Assembly: GCA_965113315.1 (NCBI GenBank) | Contig: OZ220372.1 | Source of the DNA: Podarcis vaucheri | Lineage: Eukaryota | Length of the DNA stretch: 64,000 nucleotides | Direction: 5' to 3' (one strand) | Shown: piece by piece, positions 20,591-37,765 of the stretch | Numbering within the stretch: the first letter of the stretch is position 1 | Layout of the letters: every line of letters begins with the position of its first letter | Notes under the pieces: model-generated | Told to the model about the DNA's origin: nothing | The model's input: the letters and a program-made list of their open reading frames with translations, nothing else | Database searches by the model: none | Program-made: the position numbers and the translations under genes

Positions 20591-20743
20591 ATCGGAAAAT
20601 TCTTTGGTGAGATTGACCCTGGCCTCATGCGAAATCTCATCAACATGTCCTTATATGCCTTTAACAAGTCTTATGACTATCAGTCTGTGTGTGACCCAGA
20701 AGAAGAAGCAAAGCAAGGAGCCGGACTCCGCTCTGTCTATGTG
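20591..20743 (+). CDS. CACNA2D1-like: alpha2delta exon: [51 protein letters not shown]
   Basis: attag acceptor, gtcagt donor; FFGEIDP and [12 protein letters not shown] motifs. Confidence 0.96.
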
Positions 20744-20760
20744 GTCAGTATCCTCTTGCC

Positions 20761-21365: not shown

Positions 21366-21418
21366 CCTACGATAGCAGACATATTACATCTCGGGTGGTG
21401 GGCCTCTGCAGCCGCTTG
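21366..21418 (+). CDS. CACNA2D1-like: alpha2delta exon: PTIADILHLGWWASAAAW
   Basis: tctag acceptor, gtaagt donor; GWWA.AAAW motif. Confidence 0.95.
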
Positions 21419-21984
21419 GTAAGTTGAACTTTCCAGGTAGGGTTTATTATACATTTGAACTTGTGAGGGCCTTGACCGAACGATGTATACAGAATGAATT
21501 TGCCCAGCTGAGATTTCACCCCACATTCTTCTTGTTCAAATTTAGCTGAGCATTAAATAATGTCACTGCAAAATAGGGCTACAAAATCTTTTCCCAGAGG
21601 TTCCTGAAGATATTTACGAGGTGTGCAACTCAACATAAATTAAGAACCCTTGTTTTTGCAATGAAAGTGAACTTCTGCATTGGAGGGTAATCCAGAGAGG
21701 AAACCCAAACATGACTGAATATTTAAAAAACGGGTTATCAGTGATGATATCAGACACAGAGGTGTCTGGACTCAGTTTGGACTTTGGGGTGTTATTGTTC
21801 TTTTCACCTGGTTTCTTGAAATGTTCTTCGTAATGAAATCTAGGAAGGGAGCTGGTAGGAAAGAGGGGGAAAGACGAAGGGGATCAGTTACCATTTAATA
21901 AGGAGAAAAGGGAAAAGGCAGATTTCAACAAATCCATGCAGTGAAACAGGGAAAGCTATGCTTCAAAGAGGAGCAGGCGATCCT

Positions 21985-22212: not shown

Positions 22213-22268
22213 GTCTATCTTGCAGCAGCTTTTTCTGGGCCTCACATTCCCACGTTTTCTTAGTGCCG
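22213..22268 (+). CDS. CACNA2D1-like: alpha2delta exon: SILQQLFLGLTFPRFLSA (end of alpha2)
   Basis: tctag acceptor, gtaagt donor; homologous to SILQQFLLSLTFPRLLEA. Confidence 0.95.
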
Positions 22269-22354
22269 GTAAGTGAAGAATCAGGTGTCAGAGACATTCC
22301 TTTGCTTTTATAATCAGGCTTCTCACAGAGCTGAACATGTTCTCTTTCTCACAG

Positions 22355-22484
22355 TGGAAATGGAGGAGGAAGACTTCAGTGCCATCCCATCTAAACAGAG
22401 CTGCATTACAGTACAAACTCAGTATTTCTTTGCCAATGATGAAAAATCATTTTATGGCATTTTAGATTGCATAAACTGTTCTAG
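22355..22484 (+). CDS. CACNA2D1-like: alpha2delta exon: [44 protein letters not shown] (start of delta)
   Basis: cacag acceptor after an 86-nt intron, gtaggt donor; KQSCIT.QTQYFF and LDC.NCSR motifs. Confidence 0.96.
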
Positions 22485-23273
22485 GTAGGTATTTCCTTAG
22501 AATTACGAAATTATGTCAAGTGCCTCTGACGCTTTCTTAATAGTGTTCTGATATTAAAGAAGCAACTGAGTTATTCATGTGAAACTATCAGTTATGAAGT
22601 AGATATAGATACAGATGATATAAATATAGATGTGTATGAATGCATTTACTTAAAATTTTTTTAACCTACCATTCATGCTTATGGATAACAGGACAGTGTA
22701 CAAAAGGCACAGCCAGCAGATCTTAACAAAATAAAATACCAAAAATTCCCACATGCACACGGGTAATCAAATAAAGCACATCTTTAACAGGTTTTAAACA
22801 GGTTTTAACCTTGCACTGAAAAGATTGCAATATTGGTGCCGGTTATATTCACTGTGGGGTGAATATTCCACAGCTGTGGTATCACCACAGAAAAGCCTCT
22901 CTCCCTTATTTCCACATAATGTGTCACTCTTAGTAAAGACACCCAAAGATGAGTTCACCTTGCTGCATTTATATATACTTCAGTAGCAATGGGCATCATG
23001 TTTTACTGTCCATATTGCTTGGAAATAGAAAGTTTGATTTTGTTGAGCAGAAGACAGGTTCTGAATATATAATATATATTATATATCTTTTCTCTGCCCA
23101 ACTGAGGTGGGGAGATCTTTGCACAAAATCAGGTTATTTGTAGCTTATGGTGCAAAAGTTGCATTAAGCCTTTGGAGTTTACCTGGTTGTCAAAAGTACT
23201 TATAGAAAATTGCCTACAAGTTCCTTTCCCCCCAGCATTAAACATTTGTTCTGTGCTTCATTTCTGTTTGCAG

Positions 23274-23386
23274 ACTTTTTCACGCAGAGAAGATTTCCAA
23301 TACAAATTTAGTATTCATAATGAGTGACACCAAACATATGTGCCGTCACTGTGATACAAGGCCACTGATGCAAGCAGAGAAGCCTG
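23274..23386 (+). CDS. CACNA2D1-like: alpha2delta exon: [37 protein letters not shown]
   Basis: tgcag acceptor; donor is U12-type GTATCCTTT. Confidence 0.95.
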
Positions 23387-25027: not shown

Positions 25028-25089
25028 TTCTTCTTCTTCTTCTTCTTCTTCTTCTTCTTCTTCTTCTTCTTCTTCTTCTTCTTCTTCTT
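25028..25089 (+). repeat. (TTC)20 microsatellite
   Basis: direct reading. Confidence 0.97.
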
Positions 25090-25135
25090 GCAAATGTGAA
25101 CATTCCATTATCCATGTTCCTTAACTGACATTCAG

Positions 25136-25218
25136 ATGAGGGGCCAAACCCCTGTGAAATGGTTCAGCAACCCAGATACAGAAAAGGGCCCGATGTCTGC
25201 TTTGATGATGATATTGAC
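25136..25218 (+). CDS. CACNA2D1-like: alpha2delta exon: [28 protein letters not shown]
   Basis: ttcag acceptor, gtaagt donor; [20 protein letters not shown] motif. Confidence 0.96.
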
Positions 25219-25796
25219 GTAAGTTTGCTTTTCTAAGAAATGGAGGAAATGCCTTCCCTGCACTAGGAAAAAAAAAGTTTTTTTTAAATGATTAGTTTGC
25301 ACCTTGAAATGCCCATTGATGTTAACCTATCTTCCATTAAATTGACTGTTGACTCTGAACCATAGTCACTCTATTTCAAATGTTCCCATGATTAACATAG
25401 AATTAACAGCTGCTTTTTTTCTGCGTTGCCTTTGCTGCAATTGCTGTGCTTTCACACATGATTCTTTTAAAGAGGGAGGTAGGGCAATATTTGCTACCAT
25501 TCTGTGCATCATGGTAACTGCTTGGCAATCTTGTCATCAGAACCTTTGAAAAAAAATGCCTAGAAAACTCTGTGGCTTTTCTTTTGGTCCTGAAGATACA
25601 GTGTAGTTGCCTAGTCCCAGTCTTCCCTGTGAATAGTAGATCTAGTGGATCAAAAGTAAGGGGTGGGGAACCTGTGGCCCTCCAGATGTTTCAGTCCCAG
25701 CCAGGTCAGAGATGATGGAAGTCCAACAACTTGGGGGGAACTGGGTTCACAGCCCCTGATCTAGATTAATTGGATTAATTCTAAGGGCTGCCATAT

Positions 25797-26140
25797 TGTG
25801 GTTCCATGGACAGTGAGGTGGTTGAGGAGCGAGCAGGTAGTAAGTAAAGACTATGAGACATGTGTTGGATTGAAATTAGACCACAACTTTATTTGGCATT
25901 GGCATTGGGCGTGCAGCCAGTGATCAACCAACCCACTTGCCGGTTGATTGACAGCTGTGGTTGACCATCGTTAGCGGTCCTCAATGGTGTGAACTGCTTT
26001 TGGCGTGCCCTGTGGCCCATCAGCCCTTGACTTGGGCTTCTGGATAGGAAGCACCACCCTCCAAGATTCCTTAAGGGAACCCCCCTTTCCTCCCATTCCT
26101 GCTAATGATCCAAACCAATGCCTCTTCTGCCACTAGACTT
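25797..26140 (-). mobile_element. decayed terminal-repeat element related to the one at 38997-39827
   Basis: ccacaactttatt is the reverse complement of the aataaagttgtgg motif of that element. Confidence 0.5.
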
Positions 26141-26645
26141 GGTGATCCTGGTAGAAATTATTCCTGTACCAAAATTTGAGAGTCCCAGATCTAGACTATA
26201 CTATACATTTTTTTTTAAGAACATGAACACAAATGGGTATTTTTTGTTGTAAAGTGTCTGCCACATTGAGAACATTGGATCACCCAATTTTAACAGTAAC
26301 ATTCATGTGCTGGAGATAGTTGGCAGAAACATTGGGAGAAACAACTATTAGCCCATCTCCATGCTCTTGATCCTGGATATGTTGTGTGTGAAAGTACAAG
26401 GAGTCTTGCTCACTAGCTTGTTGTGCTATTATCTGTGTTAACTGTGTCTTCTGTAGTTGTATTAGTGTAATATTTTACTTAAGTTTACTTTGCAATCCTC
26501 ACTGTGAAATTCTTTGCTCTTGGGTGAATGCTTTCACATTAACTCTGCTAACTGCCAGCAAACTGCATGAAATCTCATCTTGTATGTGTTTCTTTCTGTG
26601 TTTTCTTTCCTTTCCTCTACTTGCTATTTTGCCCGTTATTAATAG

Positions 26646-26734
26646 GATCAGCCTATATGCACAACGAGTCGTGCCTCTGCCATGATGTCCGCTCCTATCT
26701 CCATTTTTCTGCAAGTTTTCATGTGGTGTGGATG
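26646..26734 (+). CDS. CACNA2D1-like: candidate alternative exon DQPICTTSRASAMMSAPISIFLQVFMWCG(W); frame stays open to TAA at 26819 if the donor is not used
   Basis: ~85-nt AG-free pyrimidine-rich acceptor region, phase-0 fit to the previous exon, gtcagt donor at 26735; encodes Cys, small residues and a hydrophobic stretch like the canonical tail. No transcript evidence available. Confidence 0.5.
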
Positions 26735-27914
26735 GTCAGTTACTTTCTCTAATTTTGTGTTTCATTTTGTTTTTCAAAGTTTAGCATTTTTGTTAGTGTA
26801 TCACAGAAACATGTATTAATTGGGTGCCTTGGGGTGGTGGTGGGGAAAATAACTTGGAGCAAATGGCTTTATTTATTTATTGGGCTTGTTCAGGAGCTAT
26901 TTTCCCCCTGAGAATAGATTGGGAGCACATCCTCCTTTCCTGAATGGGAGAGTCTGTGGTTATTTGAAAAGGGTTTAATCTTCTGGGTAGTAATTCAGTT
27001 AATTTAGACATTCCCTTCTCTCTGTGGCAAGTAGAGAGACTGCACTCCCAAGGATAATCAGGGAAGACAGATACAGTTCTAAAGAGGCCACAAGATAAAC
27101 AGCCATAGTAATTTGGTGTGTTAACTTTGGAAGTGAATCCTATTGTTTCAGAACATGCTTAGAATCACAATCTGAAGACAGAAATGTATTGCATATTGTT
27201 CTTTCCTGGTCCAGCACTGTAGCAGATTGCTAACTTTAAGACTTCGCAGTCCACCCTCGCCGCTCCTAAGGAGCGGTCTGTGATAGAGCACACCTGGTTC
27301 AGTCCCTAGCAAGTTTCTAGTTAGGATAGATGGCATTTGCCCAGAGGGACCACCACAACTGCTCCTGGCAATCCTTTGTTACTTATTTTGTATCCATGAT
27401 AAGAAATCTGAAAAAGTTTGAATCTCTAAATTGGAGTCATGCCGACATTCTTAGTTGTTGGGAGGGTTGTGAGACCAATAGAATAGAGACTAATCATGTT
27501 TTGTTCTTGCTCCTATTAAGAGGTACGACTTCACAATACCGGCACTAGCCTTTTTTTTCTGAGCCTAACAAAGGAAACAAGCAAACAAAAATAGAATATT
27601 AAATATAATATTTAAATATAGTTCGCTAAAATTAAAAAGCTGTTGCTGCCTAAGAGTACAAGCATTTTAACATTTTCTTTCAATAAGGGGCTTGTGGCAT
27701 TTTCACAATCATACAGCTGGGCTACACATTACAAAGTGAATACAATATTTTCAACATTGAACTTGCTTTGTAATATTAAGCTGCTCTTCCCTTGTGAACC
27801 ATACTTTCCTGTGATTTTCCCTCAGTTGTGATCTGAGGCTAGAAGAAGTGAAGCGAAAGAGAAATTTGTCTGGGGGGCACACCTCTGAGGGGTTAATCAG
27901 TAAGGCAGTTGGAG

Positions 27915-28290
27915 TTAAGCACCCCTTCCCTTCTGCTGGTTCCGTCTGTCTTCAGAGTCAATGGAGTGCACTTCTGGGGGTAAAGTCAAACTGCTGTGTT
28001 AGCATCACTCAAATTACTTCCCCAGGGCAGTGTCCATAGAAGTCCTAGGCTGCTGAGATGACAAGACCCACTCTCGGCCCCACTGATGAGGTCCAAAGGA
28101 GAGCACCAGCTTGGCTGCAGGAGTTGCCCATAGGAGGCGTACATAGTGCTATCCAGCTGTCTTAGGGTTTACTCCTGAGTCTTTTCTTCTCCAGATGATT
28201 TCCTGCCAGGCAGCAAAGGTTTAGGACCAGAATTTTTCTTCTCCTAGATAGGCTCCTTAGCCTGGTTGACGAGCCCCATATGGGAAACCT
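27915..28290 (-). mobile_element. decayed RTE-type LINE 5' region
   Basis: recalled similarity (ggcaccagcttggctgcaggagttgcc; gacgagcccc); not verified. Confidence 0.4.
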
Positions 28291-30270
28291 CTCCCCCCCC
28301 AAATGCCCCTTTACATTTATGCCATCTGACCCATATACCATGTCATTCCACCCTGAAAATCCTCAGTCCTTATTTGTGCATAGTGCTGAGGACAGGATCC
28401 TAGTTGTTGGAAATTGTATGTTTTATAGACAAGGTTAAACCTTCTTTTAACAGGCTGGATCTAGACACATCAAAGAAGTGTTTCAGTTTAAAGCACTGTA
28501 AATTTAAAGAGGGAAAACAGATAGAGAAAAACGGGACTCCACACCGCCATCTTTACCAGTCTAGCTGAGTCCATATTTTCAGGCAATTTTACCTGCTGCA
28601 AAACACATCCTTCAAATAGGGCAAACTCTACAATTCTATGGCCTCAGGAGGTGTGGGGAGCAGCCACCCCCACCCCCTGCCTTAGAAATAAGTGAGTGGC
28701 CTCATTCATTCACTTCTCAAGTAGATGTTCATTTAATCTAGTGAAGTAACAGGTGCGCCTCTCCTTCCACCCAAGCCTAGTGCATCATGTGAACTATGTG
28801 CTTCACATGGAGTCTTCTATGTGCAAAAGCTGGCACGCTTTGCTCCTCAAAAAGGGAAGGGAATCATTGGTTGAATCAGGACTGTTTGCATGCATGCCTT
28901 TGTACGGCGAATCTCTCCCACATGTGTGGTTCTAGTATCTGGTGAAAGCAGTGCATCCTGCCCCGTGGGATTTTGGTCATCACCTGGTAAGCGCATGACC
29001 TGGCTAACTTCCAGCCATTGTCACCATGGGCTGAGGTGGTCCTGGTCATGCTAACTCAGGCTGCACTGCTCAGCATATGCTGGCCTTACCACCACAACTG
29101 CTCCTAAAGCTACTCTAATAAGAGCTCATCTCTGCCAAGTTCTGCTTGTGATACTGGCATGCTTAGGGCCATCTCTGTGCATTTGAGTCACAGCTAGAAG
29201 TTGTCACAGATTAACAAACTCTTTTCTTATTTATTAATTTATGGGAAGCTCTAACAAAAACCAGATTCCCCAGGAAAGGATTCCCCTGGGAAGCTCAAAC
29301 TAAAAACAGATACTTAATTTTATTAGGTATATTTGTTTTTTTAAACTGTTGATTTTGATAACTTTACATTATCTACTTGCTTAAAGTTTGATAACTTTAC
29401 ATTATCTGCTGTTGATTTTATCGGTATTTTTATCGGTATTTTCTTGTAAACTACTTAGAGGTGGTTGTTTTCTGATTAAACAGTATATGAATAGGGTTCC
29501 TAGACAGTCCTCCTTCCCAGCCACTCACTATAACCCGACCAACTAGGTTTCAGTATAATTTGCTGCATCATGTGGCATCTGAAGATGCCTTGAGCAGCCA
29601 GGACGTTACATACAAAGGCATAGCTTATGATATTGCAGAGCTATATACTAATTATACTGGTATGTGATAATGCATATTTTTCTATATAATATATAATACA
29701 GAATATTGTATGTATGCCCTATAATGGATATTTGATTACAAGCACTGTATGCCTGCTGAACTGGGGTGAAGATGGATGAAACATAAATATGGCTCACATA
29801 AAACTTTTTAGCTGCTGTGCAAACTGATTCCAGCAAATGAAGTGTTTTCTAGTCATCTGTCTGAATCTTCCTATGTAGTTCAGTGAGGCATTTTGCATTT
29901 TTAGAACACTGTTTGAATGTTCAGTTCTTAATTCTTCACCTTTATTGATTTAAAAAGGAAACTGCTCCAGGAAATGAGTGGAGCAGGTTTTCTCTTAGGA
30001 AAGTCGAGGTTGCTGGGCAATCACTGGTTCTGCTCTAGGATTGCAGGACTCCAGTTTTCAGAGGTCAAGCTTGGAGAAGGAAGGTACATTTGGACTCAAA
30101 GTAGTGAGGGTATTTCCAGAGCAGCCCTACTGCTCTTACATCAATCCTTACCCTTAACTTATCTTCCTAGAGTCCCACTAGAGGGAGACATCATCCTGGC
30201 CATCTCTTAACATTGAATAGAGAAAAATCATAAAAGTGGGAATGGGTTTCTGTTTGTGTTGTGTATGTAG

Positions 30271-30306
<36 letters not shown>

Positions 30307-30559
30307 TAAGAACAGTTGCTAGACTTGATATCTGGTGTCTATCTCTAGAGATGCACTGTTTCTTCAAGATATTGGGGGTGGGAGACAAATTAGTTTCTGG
30401 CATTTGTTTACCTTCTGTTGTGCACAGCTTGTTTGATAACTTTTTGAAAATTAACTTCGTATTCTATAAACGCTCTTTATTCTATGGGCACAAAACAAAA
30501 AGACCACCTGTGCCCCAGTGGCTTCAAGTTACAAAAAAAGGAGATTCCAACCAAACATC

Positions 30560-30746
30560 AGGAAAAAACATTCCGACAGTGAGTGCCTATTTGACAATGG
30601 AATCTCTCAGGAGGTTGTGGAGGTTTTTAAGCAGAGGTTGGATGGTCATCTGTCATGGACACTTTAGCTGAGATTCCTGCATTGCAGGCGGTTAGACTGG
30701 ATGACATTTGGGGTCACTTTCAACTCCACAATTCTACGATTCTATG
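30560..30746 (+). mobile_element. CR1 LINE 3' fragment
   Basis: ggaggtttttaagcagaggttggatgg...attctacgattctatga tail. Confidence 0.85.
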
Positions 30747-33700
30747 AAAACTATCCCACCCCACTCTTTATCCAGAAGCCTCCTGCCCCAATCTTCTACC
30801 AAGGATCAGGAGACCCTTCTGAATGGGGTTGAGATGAGGAGGAAGGGGGGAATGGCCCCAAATGTCACCTTCTGTGGGCAGGTTTTCAGTGATCCTCATT
30901 TTCTCCTCTACGCCGTCATTTCACAATCCACTCCATTCAGCAAGGTCTCCAGCACCCGAGAAGAGACTGTGGGGGCTTCAGGGGGAGCTGTTTGGGGAAA
31001 TTTTCACCCTGTGCAACCCCTTTCGCAGGCATTTCTTTTGTTCTGGGAAGGTGCTCTGGCGAACGTCAAAGGGATATGTGGGGCGAAGATGCTTTGCACT
31101 GCCCCTCCCTGGTGATCCTCAAAGGGATGTGGCAGGGCCCTGAATTCTTGAGGAGCCTGACCCCTTCCTTGAAAATATGGGGGGTTCCCCCCTGCCCCCC
31201 CATGGTGCGCCTGAGCAACAATGTGGCACAATCACTACAGGGGTGTTGTTTTACTAGGTGAGTGCAATTTGAAAATGGGTCCTGCTCTATTTATCCTACA
31301 TGTTTCATATGGGAGTACAGGCCCGGCCTTTTCTTGAGGTCAGTGAAGTCATCCCAGTGAAGCCTAGAATATCTAATTCCTTGCAAGACTTCACTGAAAC
31401 CTACAAAATGCACCACCAGCCATTTTTATTCCTTCAGACATTACCTTGAATTGCTGCTCTCCCTCGATTGCACCCAAGCTGTCTCCCGTTAATGCCTGCA
31501 ACTTCTGCAACATAGTTGTGCTGAGGGATGTACGTCACCTGCAACACTCCCTCCCAGTTTGGGTTGTGCGTAACTAGTACCATGCATAACCATACCATCG
31601 TGCCGCTGCAAGTAATGCATGAAGCGGGCATTAGAGGAAGAGAAACCACCCTCTCCTTGGTGGAAAGTGCCCTGCTCTGCCCAGCCTGCCTCAAGCATGG
31701 CTTGTACTTAAAGCAACACAATCCGTTTTGAACAGAAGAGCACAACTATCCCTTCCTCCTAATCATTTGTCAGTGTATCATTGACTGAGAAGCACTCAGG
31801 AGGGGAAATGAATCAGGAGATATACTAAACCACAGTGATCATTCACAAGAAATGTGTATTTCCCAGTTCTGCTTTGATTTCTTGGGCAGGATCCCAACCT
31901 GCAGATGGCACAGCACAGTGATAGGTTTCTTGGAGTGGAAGGCGGAACTGGCAGTCTCCTGACTAGGGGAGACCTGATGCAGCTGGTGACAATTTTGAAA
32001 CTTGCAGCATAGGAAGAATGGCAATCTGCAAAACAAACTTTTAATTGAAAACTTCTCCATTAATTCTGATTTTAAAAAAAAAACGTGTTGGCAGAGATGT
32101 ACTTACCAAGGGCTTTAACGGGCGTTTGGCATGTCTTAGTGCAACATCACCCTCTCAGAACAATGAACCAAAGTTTAAATGGACGGAAAAGCCACGTTTT
32201 GTGAAAACTAAACAGTTCCCAATAACAATTTGTGTAAACAAGTGTTATCTCTGAATGCTTCAAAACTTTTTGTAATGAATATTGCAAAAGACCAACAGCT
32301 AAACACAGCTGCTAAATCTCCAGCCTCCTTCTCAATGCCCAGACCTGCTCTTAGCAGAGCAGGCTCCAGAATGCCATAAGCTCAGGTGGAGCTCAAAGCT
32401 GCCTGACGCAGTGAGGAGGAGCAGCAGCACAAACACACAAGTAGAAGACCCTGAGAAAGCACATTGTTGCTTTTAAGTTTACTCTTCCTACTTAATTAAT
32501 TCTTTTTCATTTCCTAATGGGAGGGGGGCAGTGCTGACAAAAGCCTGACTAATTTCTTTTCTGAAATTAGCCCTGGGTTCGGGAGCAACAAAAGGCTATA
32601 ATGGGTATTAAATGATCCTGCAAAGCTACAATAACATATTGAGTCAGAGGCTTACATGTGATCTCTTTTGGATGTGCATTTTAATACTAATTTTTTTAAT
32701 GAGGTCAAAGATTCTCTGGACATCCCAGAAGTGCTACTAAGTTCCTTGCCAACATCATGAGTTATTTGCATTTTCTGAAGGCAAATCTATAAGGGTTTTT
32801 TGGCTTCCTCTTGCTTGAGTCACTCACTATTAAGTTCCACAGAACCTTTCTGCAGAATTTATATGTGCACTAAGTACGAATGCAGAATAGCCTCCTAGCA
32901 GAAATACTGGGCAAACTTCATCTCTAGACACATGTACATTTCAAGCAAATAAAAACCCATTGCAGAGAAATTTGCATTAGGAAAGACACAAGCTGAAAGA
33001 GCTAAGCCACATTTTTAGATTATCAGCAAATAGTATGCCTGCTTCCATGAAGTAATCATGTGAGCAACACAGATGTAGCAAGAAACTATGTGGCCCATCC
33101 TCTGCCAATGTGAAAAAGATAAGTGCCACAAGATAGACCACAAGATGGTCCCAGTGCATTCCTCCAGCTTAAGAGATCCAGTTCTCCCCGAGGGTAACCC
33201 AGTCTAGTGATGTTTCTCTCCAAAGCCCCATCCCATGCCCGGTTTAGAGATATTAGGAATATTAGATAGAGAGACAGCAAACCCAGTTTAGTGTGCTTTC
33301 TGTGTCTCTGGAGGCATACTGAATATTTCAGGACTGTAAATGTTTTTCATTTGGTAGGACACTACACTACGCTCACTCACACACACACCTGGAAAGATTT
33401 ATCCTTTAATTTTAAATTGCAAACACTGACCAAGTTCCAACACTTCAAAGAGCTGAGATGCTCACACTCTTCTGACATACTGTTTGCCTTCAGATAAATA
33501 TTTTTGAAGAGATTCCTATGAATTCATACATCTGAGAGCTGTTCCTTTGGATTCAGACATCCCCATATATTTTCTTCTTTTTAAAAAAATCCATGTGAAT
33601 AACCAGTTCTGAAACAGCATTTTCCGTGCAGATGATTCCACAGTAGTCATTCCAAAAATACTTTAGTGCAGAGTAGAAGTTACAGTAGAAATTGGTTCTT

Positions 33701-35240
33701 CAGACATATTTCACTCCTTATCTTGTTGGAAGTTTCCTTGTCCATGTCTCTTAATTCTTTATTTCATTCTAATCTTGGCTGGGCCTTTTCTACCCTTTGT
33801 ATAAATCTTCAGATGCTTTGAAAATCAAACATTCATACGCATAATCTAAACTACATATCATTTTCAGTGAAAGGGAGCTTTCAAAATTCTTTTAATAAAT
33901 TCACTTGTTATCTAGAAAAACAAATAAATTGGCTAAAGATCTTAAGAATTTTGAATGATAACATTTATGGTAGATATTATTTTTAAAAATATACAAATAA
34001 AAAATGGAACGAGAAAAATAGCATTACTCACATAGGCATGTTTTCAAAGGTGTTTGCATCAGGGCAAACTTTTAAAAAGTTCTACAGTCCTAAGGAGAGC
34101 AGCTTTTGCAGGGAAGACATGGGGGAACTGCAGTGGGTGGGCATGATCATCAAAAAGGAAAGTGTGCATGAAAGAAAGTGTGTTCTGCTCAGGCAGAAAT
34201 ACATTTGGAGGCATGCCATAATAGGTAATGCTGAGTTAAAGCAGCAGCAGCAGCAACAACAACAACAACAAAAGATTTCATTTATTCAAAATAATATTAA
34301 ATCAGCTCTAAAGTGCCTTGCCGTATGTTCTTTTCATGCACAACTCCATCCCAAAAAATTATTAAAGGAGACCAAGTTTCAGAAAAAACAACTGGGTGAG
34401 CATAGCTTCCCATCCCACAACCATCTGGAACATGTTAACGTATTCATTAAAGCAGTCTGCAACACTTTTCTCAACCACTCAAGCCATTTTTCCAAAATTT
34501 TGCCAGTAAAGATTCTGGCTGTCAACTAACAGAGTAAGTTTTAGTTCACTGAACAAGCTTACTAATGGATTATACTGGATTTTATAAAAATGTATATTCT
34601 TAATCACTCCTAAGTTATTTTGCCAATACATTTTCAGCCTCCTATGTCTCCACCATGTGTGAAGATAGGTGGCATCCACTCAACGATATCTTACACAATT
34701 CCCAGACAGCATACATTTTTGTTAATTTGGGAGGTTTAAGTTTTCTAGAATTCTTCTCTCAAAAATATGTGTAAAGAATAGCTATGATGAAACTTGCATA
34801 TATAATTCCAGTGTTCTTCTAACTTGAGCATCTCCAGAACTCTTTCTCATTACTTGATTATATTACTTCATTTTATTAACAGTAGAATCCATACATTTAG
34901 ATAACAGGCTCCTATAAAATTTCATATTCATCACCAAATGTTCACACTCAGTTAACAGCTTGGTAGTATAATCTTAGTAAATAAATTTCTGTGTTTAAGG
35001 TACTAAAGGAGGAGGAGGTTTTTTTTATCAGTTGAGGAAAGACCAATTGGTTTTTGTTTAGTTTCATGAAAGAAGCTCTGCTACAGCATGACACAACACA
35101 GACACAAAGAGTGGGAGAGGGAGCCAAACTAAACAACCCTAAAAGTTCAGTATATCATCTGATCTTATTCCAGATAGGGTTGTGTGCCAAATAGAATGCA
35201 AAATTTTCCTGATGGCTTTATTAACTGGTACCTGCATTAT

Positions 35241-35590
35241 AGCGGGACGTGGGTGGCGCTGTGGTCTAAATCACTGAGCCTCTGGGCTTGCCAATCAGAA
35301 GGTCAGCGGTTCGAATCCCCACAATGGGGTGAGCTCCTGTTGTTCAGTCTCAACTCCTGCCAACCTAGCAGTTCAAAAGCACGTCAAAGTGCAAGTAGAT
35401 AAATCAGTACCGCTCCAGCGGGAAGCTAAACGGCGTTTCCGTGTGCTGCTCTGGTTTCACCAGAAGCAGCTTAGTCATGCTGGCCACATGACCTGGAAAA
35501 ACTCTGCGGACAAATGTCAGCTCCCTTGGCCAGTAAAGCGAGATGAGCGCCGCAACCCCAGAGTCGTCTGTGACTAGACTTAATTACATA
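35241..35590 (+). mobile_element. Sauria SINE
   Basis: head and body intact; 11-bp TSD ACCTGCATTAT. Confidence 0.9.
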
Positions 35591-37648
35591 ACCTGCATTA
35601 TTGAAATAAAGTAAATACCCAAGTATTTGGATTTGGAAAGTGGGGGGGGGGGAGCAAACATATGGATGGTGTCCCAGTGGCTTAAATGGCAGCTCCAACC
35701 TTCAGGTGTTAAAGGCAGAACTCAAAGACTTGAGACTCAGGTCCAGTGTCAAATACTTCATCTCCATCACTCAGCTGCTCTGAAACCCTGGCCCAACCAA
35801 GGTTGGAATTCCAAGCTTGGAATGGCCAAAAGCAGAAGTATTGGCATTCTGGAAAGTGCCTTGGATTCAAAGGATCCTAAGCTGTCCTGGTCTCTTGAGG
35901 GGAAATGTAGACATGCTTCTGAAGTTAAAATATCCAGGGCTCCTGAAATATGATCTAGTTTTAGTAAAAGGGTTGCCAACCTTTCTGGGCCAGTGGGTAC
36001 ATTTGGAATTCTGAGAAAGTGCTGTGGGTGCCAGTCAAAAGGCGACTGCTGTGGGGGGTGGGGCATGGCATAACACAAAATGGCTGTTAACTTCTAAAAG
36101 AAGAGAAAGTGAAAGGACCACAAAATGGAGCAGGCACCCCCCTCCATCAATGGGGAGAACAGACTTACATCAACCGCCACCAAAAGCAGAGAGAGAGAGA
36201 GAGAGAGAGATACAAGCTAGGAAAAGTAAACAATCTTTTAAATCAACCAACCTGTCCAATGATAATTAGCAGGTCTATCATGACCTCTGCATTGATTATA
36301 AGCTATTACAATTTTGGACAATTCTGCCCAATTATCTTGTAATTTTGACTGTGTTCTGTAAAAAAAAAAAAGGGAAGGGGGAGAAAAAGATACAATATGT
36401 TGGTTTTTATTAACCTAAGCATTTCCCATTCTGTAAAGAACCAACCACAATTCTTTCTGCAACCAAACGATTGCTGCTAATAATTTAACTAACCTATAAA
36501 ACAGCACTCCCAAGTTCAATTTATGCCTTTTGGGTAGAATTAGACAAATATATTTGAGTTCCATTGGATGACTGGGAAAAGAAGCTGTTGTTCTTGGTAC
36601 CATTACTGCTTGGTTGCTTTGAGTTGGACCAATGCAGGCTAGGGAAGTCCAATGGCAGGTTCAGATGAATCAATCAAAACCTCTGAGGCTTGTGCAAGTT
36701 GCCAACTAAATTGAATAAAACCAGAAAGATCTGAAAAGTGAGTTGTGCACCCAGTTATTGAGTCCGTTTCATTATCACGTGACCAGGGACACCATAAATC
36801 CCAATATGATGTGAGGTTAGGGGCTGCCCTTAACTCAACATTAAAGCACTTACTTGGAAGACATTACATCCCAGGTTTAATCCTTGACATTGCCTGTTGA
36901 AAAGGATGGGAGGAGCATCTACTGAATGTCAAAGAGTCACCACCAGCAAGAGTAGACAACACTGGAACAAATGGGCCCGTGGTCTGATGGTGTAAGCCAG
37001 AGTCATATGATGTAATTGCTTCCAAACCGGCTATGACTGAATTAAATATGTGTTTACAAACTGACAAATGGCAACAGTAACAACTAAACTGCACTTGTTA
37101 TTTTTAAGAACACAAGTTCTTTATTAATCGAATGTACATGCATACTGTACATGTGGTAAGCTACAAGAATGACCCTGTGAAAGTGTTTTGCTGTGGTAAG
37201 GTGTGTAATGTGATTGTGCTCTATTAACATTTCCATGCAGATTAAAATATGTATGTGTTGTCTTCTGTCAGTTGCAAGTTGGGGGGGTGTGTGTGTGACA
37301 AAAATCACTCTCCCAAGTAAGTCAAAGACCCTTTTCATATAACTGCAAGTTGAATGGTGACAAAACTGAGTTTAGGCAGTCACCACCAATACCAGGGGCT
37401 GGGCCCATGTGTCAGAGCATTTTGGCACACATGTTAATGATCTGACTTTACCCTTCCTAGGGTAAAGAGCTGCTCATTTTGGATACAAATACTTTAGTGA
37501 ACCTGTTAAAAGTTTGGTCCCCATGTGGGTCACCTCTGTGAGGATGAAACACACGAGTCATCACATGGTGAGAGAGCAATTGGAACGGGCTTGTAATTTC
37601 AGCTAATACTGACAAATCTCTTTATTTCTTTTTCTTTTTTGCCTACAG

Positions 37649-37765
37649 GAGGATGCATCAGACTGTGGTGGGGTCTCTGGATTGAGCCCATCACTATGGT
37701 CTATGGTAGGAATTCAGCTTATCCTGCTCTGGCTGTTATCTGGCAGCAGACACTGCCAGTTATGA
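37649..37765 (+). CDS. CACNA2D1-like: terminal coding exon: EDASDCGGVSGLSPSLWSMVGIQLILLWLLSGSRHCQL* (GPI-anchor/hydrophobic C-terminus)
   Basis: long T tract then ctacag acceptor; TGA at 37763-37765; homologous to EDYTDCGGVSGLNPSLWYIIGIQFLLLWLVSG. Confidence 0.96.
   Translation, partial: EDASDCGGVSGLSPSLWSMVGIQLILLWLLSGSRHCQL

Follow-up and report, generated by a model that had tools for sequence, protein, structure and literature searches.

A window of 64,000 nucleotides (nt) of Podarcis vaucheri DNA (contig OZ220372.1 of assembly GCA_965113315.1), to which all positions below refer, covers the 3' part of CACNA2D1, the gene encoding alpha2delta-1. Within the last intron of this gene lies an 89-nt segment, 26646-26734, which is probably the lizard orthologue of a genuine CACNA2D1 cassette exon conserved across tetrapods, a reading based on sequence comparison to which we assign a probability of roughly 0.85. 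If the exon is skipped, the protein would end in the canonical 38-residue tail, in which the D-C-G-G omega region is followed by a spacer and then by a hydrophobic stretch. If it is included, a tail of about 41 residues would replace the entire canonical tail, including the D-C-G-G omega region, and would present a Cys followed by clustered small residues (T-T-S-R-A-S-A) and, behind a short spacer, a hydrophobic core of 12 residues that ends in W-C. The exon is a genuine feature that is already known from gene models in the databases, and the literature searched appears to hold no functional description of it.

The alternative exon and its counterparts in tetrapods

The first match to the segment came from Equus asinus, where isoforms X20 and X18 (P0130 and P0133) have a C-terminus that matches the candidate exon and has the same out-of-frame ending. 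They were found by a word search on the region upstream of the tail, with the Propithecus protein P0023 as query, and are the only 2 of the 120 listed mammalian alpha2delta-1 isoforms with the alternative C-terminus. With the 41-residue Equus tail as query, 18 full-length alpha2delta-1 proteins carrying the alternative tail were recovered, and further ones were present as members of the same protein clusters. The squamate representative is Varanus komodoensis, with X3 (XP_044279354.1) from the tail search and X1 and X4 (XP_044279352.1 and XP_044279355.1) as cluster members. Among turtles the tail is found in Gopherus evgoodei X6 (XP_030416337.1) and Mauremys reevesii X5, with X1 as a cluster member, and among crocodilians in Crocodylus porosus X4-X6, Alligator mississippiensis X3 and X5 and Gavialis gangeticus X4-X6, joined in the clusters by Alligator X1, Gavialis X1 and an Alligator "alpha-2/delta-1-like" X1 from a second alligator assembly. 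The mammals are Equus asinus X18 (XP_070363463.1) and X20, Diceros bicornis, Rhynchocyon petersi and, as a cluster member, Dugong dugon; the amphibians are Rhinophrynus dorsalis, Discoglossus pictus and Ambystoma mexicanum X3 (XP_069483906.1). Altogether, RefSeq or GenBank models of at least 16 tetrapod species, squamate and mammals included, contain the tail, so that the exon is not "hidden" as had been supposed, nor is it missing from mammals, for which the original prediction knew of no such form. Sister isoforms of the same species in the same clusters end in the canonical tail, and the presence of both tails in one species indicates that they are alternative forms of one gene. No Podarcis vaucheri isoform with the alternative tail was among the tail-search matches in the protein collection, and the exon is possibly absent from the annotation of this species. 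Two models show variations at these junctions: Rhinophrynus isoform 3-T3 (P0254) uses a donor internal to the alternative exon, reading ...I-L-L-Q and then the out-of-frame last exon, and the Capra hircus protein P0220 has a six-residue insert, V-R-Y-L-E-N, at the junction of the penultimate and last exons.

The intron, the AG-free stretch, the CTAAC and TGCATG motifs and the AG/GAT acceptor that had been noticed in the window were all recovered at the same positions on recomputation (Table 1). The AG-free stretch (26559-26643) is 85 nt long and 72% pyrimidine; the CTAAC is a possible distal branch point, and the TGCATG may have a role in regulation by RBFOX proteins. Joined in phase 0 to ...CFDDDID, the reading frame stays open for 57 codons, past the donor, as had been claimed, and the exon itself encodes D-Q-P-I-C-T-T-S-R-A..., the hydrophobic core and a final ...W-C-G. 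The proposed donor, whose hexamer recurs at 20744 as the donor of the genuine alpha2delta-1 exon 20591-20743, and the resulting exon of 89 nt are borne out by the annotated tetrapod isoforms, with which exon, acceptor, donor and phase all agree. Since 89 is not a multiple of three, the last exon is entered out of frame and an internal stop follows after 11 codons; translation of the exon joined to the last-exon start gives a tail ending in W-C-G-W and then R-M-H-Q-T-V-V-G-S-L-D-stop. Because this stop lies inside the last exon, nonsense-mediated decay (NMD) is not expected and the inclusion mRNA should be stable; the escape from NMD had been anticipated, and the same reading is found in annotated amniote isoforms. 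A poison (NMD-triggering) cassette exon, whose inclusion would place a stop more than ~50 nt upstream of the last exon junction, was considered as well and rejected on the position of this stop. In the proposed scheme the exon would be spliced in by this lizard species, the new tail would act as an alternative C-terminal membrane-anchoring signal, and inclusion would be regulated by the conserved intronic flanks, that is, by the long AG-free pyrimidine tract with its distal CTAAC, the upstream UGCAUG and the sequence following the donor.

Table 1. Positions of the features at the 3' end of CACNA2D1 in the window
Feature	Position	Strand	Details
Constitutive penultimate coding exon	25136-25218	+	83 nt, phase-0 end, ...CFDDDID; donor GTAAGT at 25219
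Last intron	25219-37648	+	12,430 nt
Acceptor region of alternative exon	26548-26645	+	CTAAC 26548, TGCATG 26564, AG 26644-26645
Alternative cassette exon (candidate)	26646-26734	+	89 nt = 29 codons + 2 bases; acceptor AG/GAT
Donor and read-through	26735-26819	+	GTCAGT at 26735; frame open to TAA 26817-26819
Last-exon start after 89-nt inclusion	37649-37685	+	out of frame by one base, 11 codons, TGA 37683-37685
Canonical last coding segment	37649-37765	+	38 codons (E-D-A-S-D-C-G-G ... C-Q-L), TGA 37763-37765

The frame-preserving conservation in related species that the prediction called for is present in a squamate, turtles, crocodilians, mammals and amphibians, at 23-28 of 29 residues. Exon by exon, the alternative exon of the window is conserved at least as well as the adjoining constitutive coding exons (Table 2). 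Across the 13 species compared, 19 of 28 peptide columns are invariant with no insertion or deletion, and the consensus D-Q/E-P/L-I/L-C-T-T-S-R-A ... S-A-P-I ... L-Q-V-F-I/M-W-C is present in the window. The changes that do occur are conservative, with I/L/F/M in the core and S/C/T/A in the small-residue cluster. In tblastn against the window, residues 1096-1134 of Varanus X1 were placed at 26646-26762, while the upstream residues of both X1 and the canonical isoform X5 were placed on the same 16 collinear exon blocks (1786-25215). Thus the exon, which follows the penultimate and precedes the last coding exon on the + strand, agrees in gene position and phase with the annotated tetrapod isoforms. 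The spliced amniote models (turtles, crocodilians, Varanus and donkey) break after W-C-G-W and continue into the out-of-frame last exon, as in the window; the tails of Gopherus and Mauremys, for instance, end in W-C-G-W and then K-I-R-Q-T-V-V-G-S-L-D-stop. Rhinophrynus, with a slightly different exon end, also enters the last exon out of frame. The annotated isoforms therefore share with the window the gene, the position, the peptide and, in amniotes, the W-C-G-W junction. They differ from it in that the Discoglossus and Ambystoma models stop within the alternative exon, right after ...W-C, rather than in the last exon, and at codon 19 of the exon (26700-26702), where the window has Ser and 13 of 13 other species have Phe (S-A-P-I-S vs S-A-P-I-F).

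Table 2. Identical residues between the window and other species, exon by exon; figures for the canonical tail are given only where a canonical isoform of the same or a close species was in hand
Compared with	Alternative exon	Penultimate exon	Canonical last exon
Varanus	28/29	26/27	34/38
Turtles and crocodilians	27/29	21-23/27	32/38 (one alligator model)
Mammals	23-24/29	19/27	29-30/38
Amphibians	23-25 of 28-29	18/27	31-32/38

Competing explanations

The alternative that survives best, though we consider it improbable, is that the segment is an ultraconserved splicing-regulatory or non-coding element which resembles an exon by accident, is included only rarely, gives a tail without a function of its own and is conserved at the level of RNA or DNA. 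It draws on the flank downstream of the donor. The Diceros, Rhynchocyon and Dugong models, which do not come from the Gnomon pipeline, read through the donor, and their first eight read-through codons (W-S-V-T-F-S-N-F) are identical to those of the lizard, so that at least ~24 nt of intron past the donor are conserved from lizard to mammals. This points to a splicing-regulatory constraint on the flank. Moreover, 6-8% of the sampled words of 25100-26850 occur in small contig sets (38-148 Mb) of other organisms, which suggests a near-identical core, and the exon is contained in very few mammalian models and in no bird models. On the other hand, all spliced amniote models keep the frame open and share its phase and splice junction, and not a single indel has accumulated in 28 codons from amphibians to reptiles to mammals. 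The residue substitutions, as described above, are of a conservative kind, the reptile "X1" models include the exon, and inclusion gives no NMD target, hence no classical poison exon. Taken on its own, the word sampling of 25100-26850 gave 6-8% in the contig sets of three other organisms, 37-46% in small contig sets of organism A and all words in organism E, which is probably the source genome; the shared words would fit an ultraconserved core, which might be a capture-probe locus, or else transcribed sequence.

Several observations count against a functional cassette exon. The conservation past the donor implies that part of the constraint acts on nucleotides rather than on protein, and the hydrophobic core of the window has a lineage-specific Phe-to-Ser change, its sole private core change. 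The annotated isoforms are computational models, and homology to other proteins may be the source of some of them. No bird or fish protein was among the matches of the tail search and mammals were represented by only four species; this scarcity in birds, fish and mammals may reflect lineage differences in use, low inclusion or loss of the exon. Likewise, no protein with the alternative tail was found among the Logan (read-assembly) proteins of ~590-1880 aa and 31-100 aa, and no run recorded as RNA was among the sequencing runs containing 25100-26850, where RNA status was at most a guess; four raw RNA runs of organism A were listed besides.

Less probable still is an alternative terminal exon, in which the donor at 26735 would be ignored and a more hydrophobic tail of 57 residues would be made up to the TAA, combined with intronic polyadenylation. 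The frame is indeed open for 57 codons, and the Diceros, Rhynchocyon and Dugong models do read through. However, all the NCBI Gnomon models (Varanus, turtles, crocodilians and donkey) splice at the donor, the three exceptions all come from other pipelines, and the lizard and mammalian read-through sequences diverge after the first eight codons. In addition, no AATAAA follows downstream, and one has to go ~780 nt, to 27598, to reach an ATTAAA. The 57-residue tail put forward in the prediction is therefore not the form used in the NCBI spliced models, being limited to the three non-Gnomon mammalian ones. In a word search restricted to proteins of 31-100 aa the 57-residue read-through peptide gave no match, a result that is thus uninformative about full-length isoforms.

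Lastly, a chance pseudo-exon, i.e. an intronic AG with a pyrimidine tract and an open frame but no biological role, is compatible with the window, where every single feature is at chance level and where neither a repeat nor a likeness to the canonical last exon is seen, but is refuted by a peptide 79-97% identical to alpha2delta-1 isoform C-termini, at the same position and phase, in at least 16 tetrapod species. These lineages are, by our own dating, ~300 million years or more apart, and a neutral intron would not keep such identity. The figures from the window alone illustrate how little the single features weigh: an AG-exclusion zone of at least 85 nt precedes 2 of the 829 AG sites of the intron, where the AG frequency of the intron predicts ~2 by chance, and a zone of at least 50 nt combined with a pyrimidine-rich tract precedes 7 AG sites. 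At least 29 open phase-0 codons follow 23% of the intron AG sites and at least 57 follow 7.5%, and of the 29-codon open frames 11.5% are as hydrophobic as the candidate or more so, with 7% also having an early Cys. Judged by the 12.4-kb intron alone the candidate is a plausible pseudo-exon; it is the cross-species match that raises it far above chance. With respect to origin from a transposon or repeat, BLAST of the window against itself revealed no second copy of the candidate exon. A duplicated copy of the last exon was also considered and rejected, as neither blastn nor blastp gave a match between the alternative and canonical segments.

Layout of the alternative tail and membrane anchoring

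The claim that inclusion replaces the canonical tail, which is regarded as a glycosylphosphatidylinositol (GPI) signal, agrees with the annotated alternative-tail isoforms. The prediction also described the new tail as a mirror of the canonical one, and this holds for the layout: the hydrophobic core lies at the same distance from the exon junction, at residues 18-30 in the alternative and 20-31 in the canonical tail. It does not hold for the sequence, since the two tails align locally with a best score of 17, a value reached by 70% of shuffles (P = 0.70). GPI signals require small residues at omega and omega+2, a spacer of ~6-10 residues and a hydrophobic stretch at or near the C-terminus (PMC3112168). 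When the tails were laid out with a rule-of-thumb script following these rules, the triplet S-R-A was found in every species, usually together with A-S-A, followed by a spacer of 4-7 residues, counted as 6-7 after the S-R-A triplet, and the 12-residue hydrophobic core, with a Kyte-Doolittle (KD) value of 2.1-2.4.

The species differ in what follows the core, namely no residue in Discoglossus and Ambystoma, 12 in amniotes and 19 in Rhinophrynus. The two amphibian models without further residues, which have a 19-residue run and no tail beyond it, have by their sequence the classical form of a GPI signal. A type I transmembrane anchor calls for ~20 uncharged, mostly hydrophobic residues flanked by charged ones, and for a cytoplasmic tail. 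The amniote tails, in which an uncharged run of 21 residues is bounded by Arg and Lys/Arg and followed by 11 residues, would suit a transmembrane helix with a short tail just as well. As the residues after the core vary in number from 0 to 19 and are set by the frame in which the last exon happens to be read, a function for them is unlikely, and for this reason a second GPI-attachment signal is favored over a transmembrane anchor; its omega site would lie in the conserved S-R-A triplet. We would give the second GPI signal about an even chance and consider a retained transmembrane anchor possible but distinctly less probable. The core contains an invariant Gln and an invariant Trp, and its conservation across tetrapods matches that of the adjoining constitutive exons. 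Such strong conservation would not be expected of a signal that is merely cut off, and it keeps the transmembrane reading open. It appears rather unlikely that the alternative tail, instead of being cleaved as a GPI signal, is retained as a membrane-spanning or membrane-embedded anchor, which would give tetrapods two differently anchored alpha2delta-1 proteins. If it were true, it could reconcile the long dispute between transmembrane and GPI anchoring and would bear on the claimed binding of the alpha2delta-1 C-terminus to NMDA receptors and other partners (PMC3112168; PMC12303104).

This dispute concerns the canonical tail, which is regarded as a GPI signal that is cleaved off, Gly1060 being the omega site (PMC3112168). 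It is unresolved (PMC5043047; PMC3112168; PMC12303104), with published dissent favoring a type I transmembrane topology (PMC3112168) and with reported C-terminal interactions of alpha2delta-1 with NMDA and AMPA receptors that are hard to reconcile with cleavage (PMC12303104). A role for the Cys of D-C-G-G in the disulfide between alpha2 and delta, on which the prediction also drew, found no confirmation in the literature searched. Alpha2delta-1 is the target of the gabapentinoid drugs and, for CaV1 and CaV2 channels, a key trafficking subunit. Whether it has a GPI or a type I transmembrane anchor has been argued since 2010, and the anchor decides whether the C-terminus meets membrane partners (PMC3112168; PMC12303104). 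Most functional work has used canonical-tail cDNAs from mammalian brain or muscle. An exon shared from amphibians to mammals that replaces exactly the anchor signal would be a natural experiment, seemingly overlooked in the literature searched, and the two tails offer a comparison of anchor type, efficiency of GPI attachment, raft targeting, channel enhancement, gabapentin binding and tissue use.

Gene context and known systems

The exons in the window encode alpha2delta-1 in the correct order. The exon 20591-20743 (51 aa) matched alpha2delta-1 proteins with E-values down to 2e-19 in a search of representative proteins, and Varanus alpha2delta-1 residues ~651-1136 were placed by tblastn on 17 collinear blocks at 1786-37762, most of them 80-100% identical. 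This identity, together with the diagnostic tail, speaks against an extra paralogue in place of CACNA2D1. Searches with the lizard sequence ran exon by exon, and the proteins recovered include primate or human-type alpha2delta-1, P0017 for example. About 16 of the coding blocks recovered with the Varanus query are upstream, at 1786-25218. Four lie between 20744 and 25135, at ~21366-21419, 22214-22267, 22354-22485 and 23248-23385, so that the antepenultimate exon is a different one from that ending at 20743. In tblastn, the penultimate exon was identical to Varanus (P0239, P0240) in 27/27 residues at 25135-25215. The 38-codon last segment is the canonical hydrophobic GPI-signal tail of alpha2delta-1 (D-C-G-G ... 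hydrophobic ... S-G-S-R-H-C-Q-L): the Varanus X5 tail was placed at 37643-37762, with 34/38 residues identical, compared to 32/38 for Alligator and 29-30/38 for mammals (equid and elephant shrew).

Two further observations concern the penultimate exon. A long (CTT)n/(TCT)n microsatellite at 25040-25092, ~45 nt upstream of the acceptor, extends its pyrimidine tract. At the other end, the unspliced donor (25219-25236) reads V-S-L-L-F-stop, with an ATTAAA at 25336; a similar short read-through end is found in the Monodon model P0159, and a partial Camelus ferus model (P0105) has an aberrant tail after this exon. A form without an anchor signal that arises by intronic polyadenylation, or alternatively an annotation artefact, is conceivable.

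Alternative splicing of CACNA2D1 is known at three places, regions A, B and C, which correspond to exon 18a, an alternative acceptor of exon 19 and a cassette exon (PMC5043047; PMC7351808) and go back to Angelotti & Hofmann 1996 and Lana et al. 2014, as far as these are summarized in a review (PMC5043047). Like the 89-nt exon they are alternatively spliced parts of one gene, and their tissue-specific use is known. Unlike it, they are in-frame insertions in alpha2, far upstream, and none of them touches the C-terminal anchor signal. Exon 19 is regulated by MBNL, and the splicing papers that identify the CACNA2D1 event concern this exon, while others leave the exon unspecified. A C-terminal, penultimate, ultraconserved or RBFOX-linked CACNA2D1 exon was not described in the literature searched, which covered few subscription papers.

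As to a non-GPI form, CACHD1 resembles the alpha2delta proteins and is a true transmembrane protein (PMC12303104). Vertebrates thus have an ectodomain of the alpha2delta type on an anchor other than GPI, which makes a transmembrane-anchored form of alpha2delta-1 plausible, although CACHD1 differs in being a separate gene and not a splice form of CACNA2D1. Splicing switches between GPI and transmembrane or other anchors are well known from NCAM-120 vs NCAM-140/180 and from the H and T forms of acetylcholinesterase. As is proposed here for alpha2delta-1, an alternative 3' exon swaps the C-terminal hydrophobic signal in these proteins while the ectodomain remains unchanged. In contrast to NCAM and acetylcholinesterase, both tails of alpha2delta-1 look like GPI signals by rule of thumb, so that the switch in CACNA2D1 may be one between two GPI signals.

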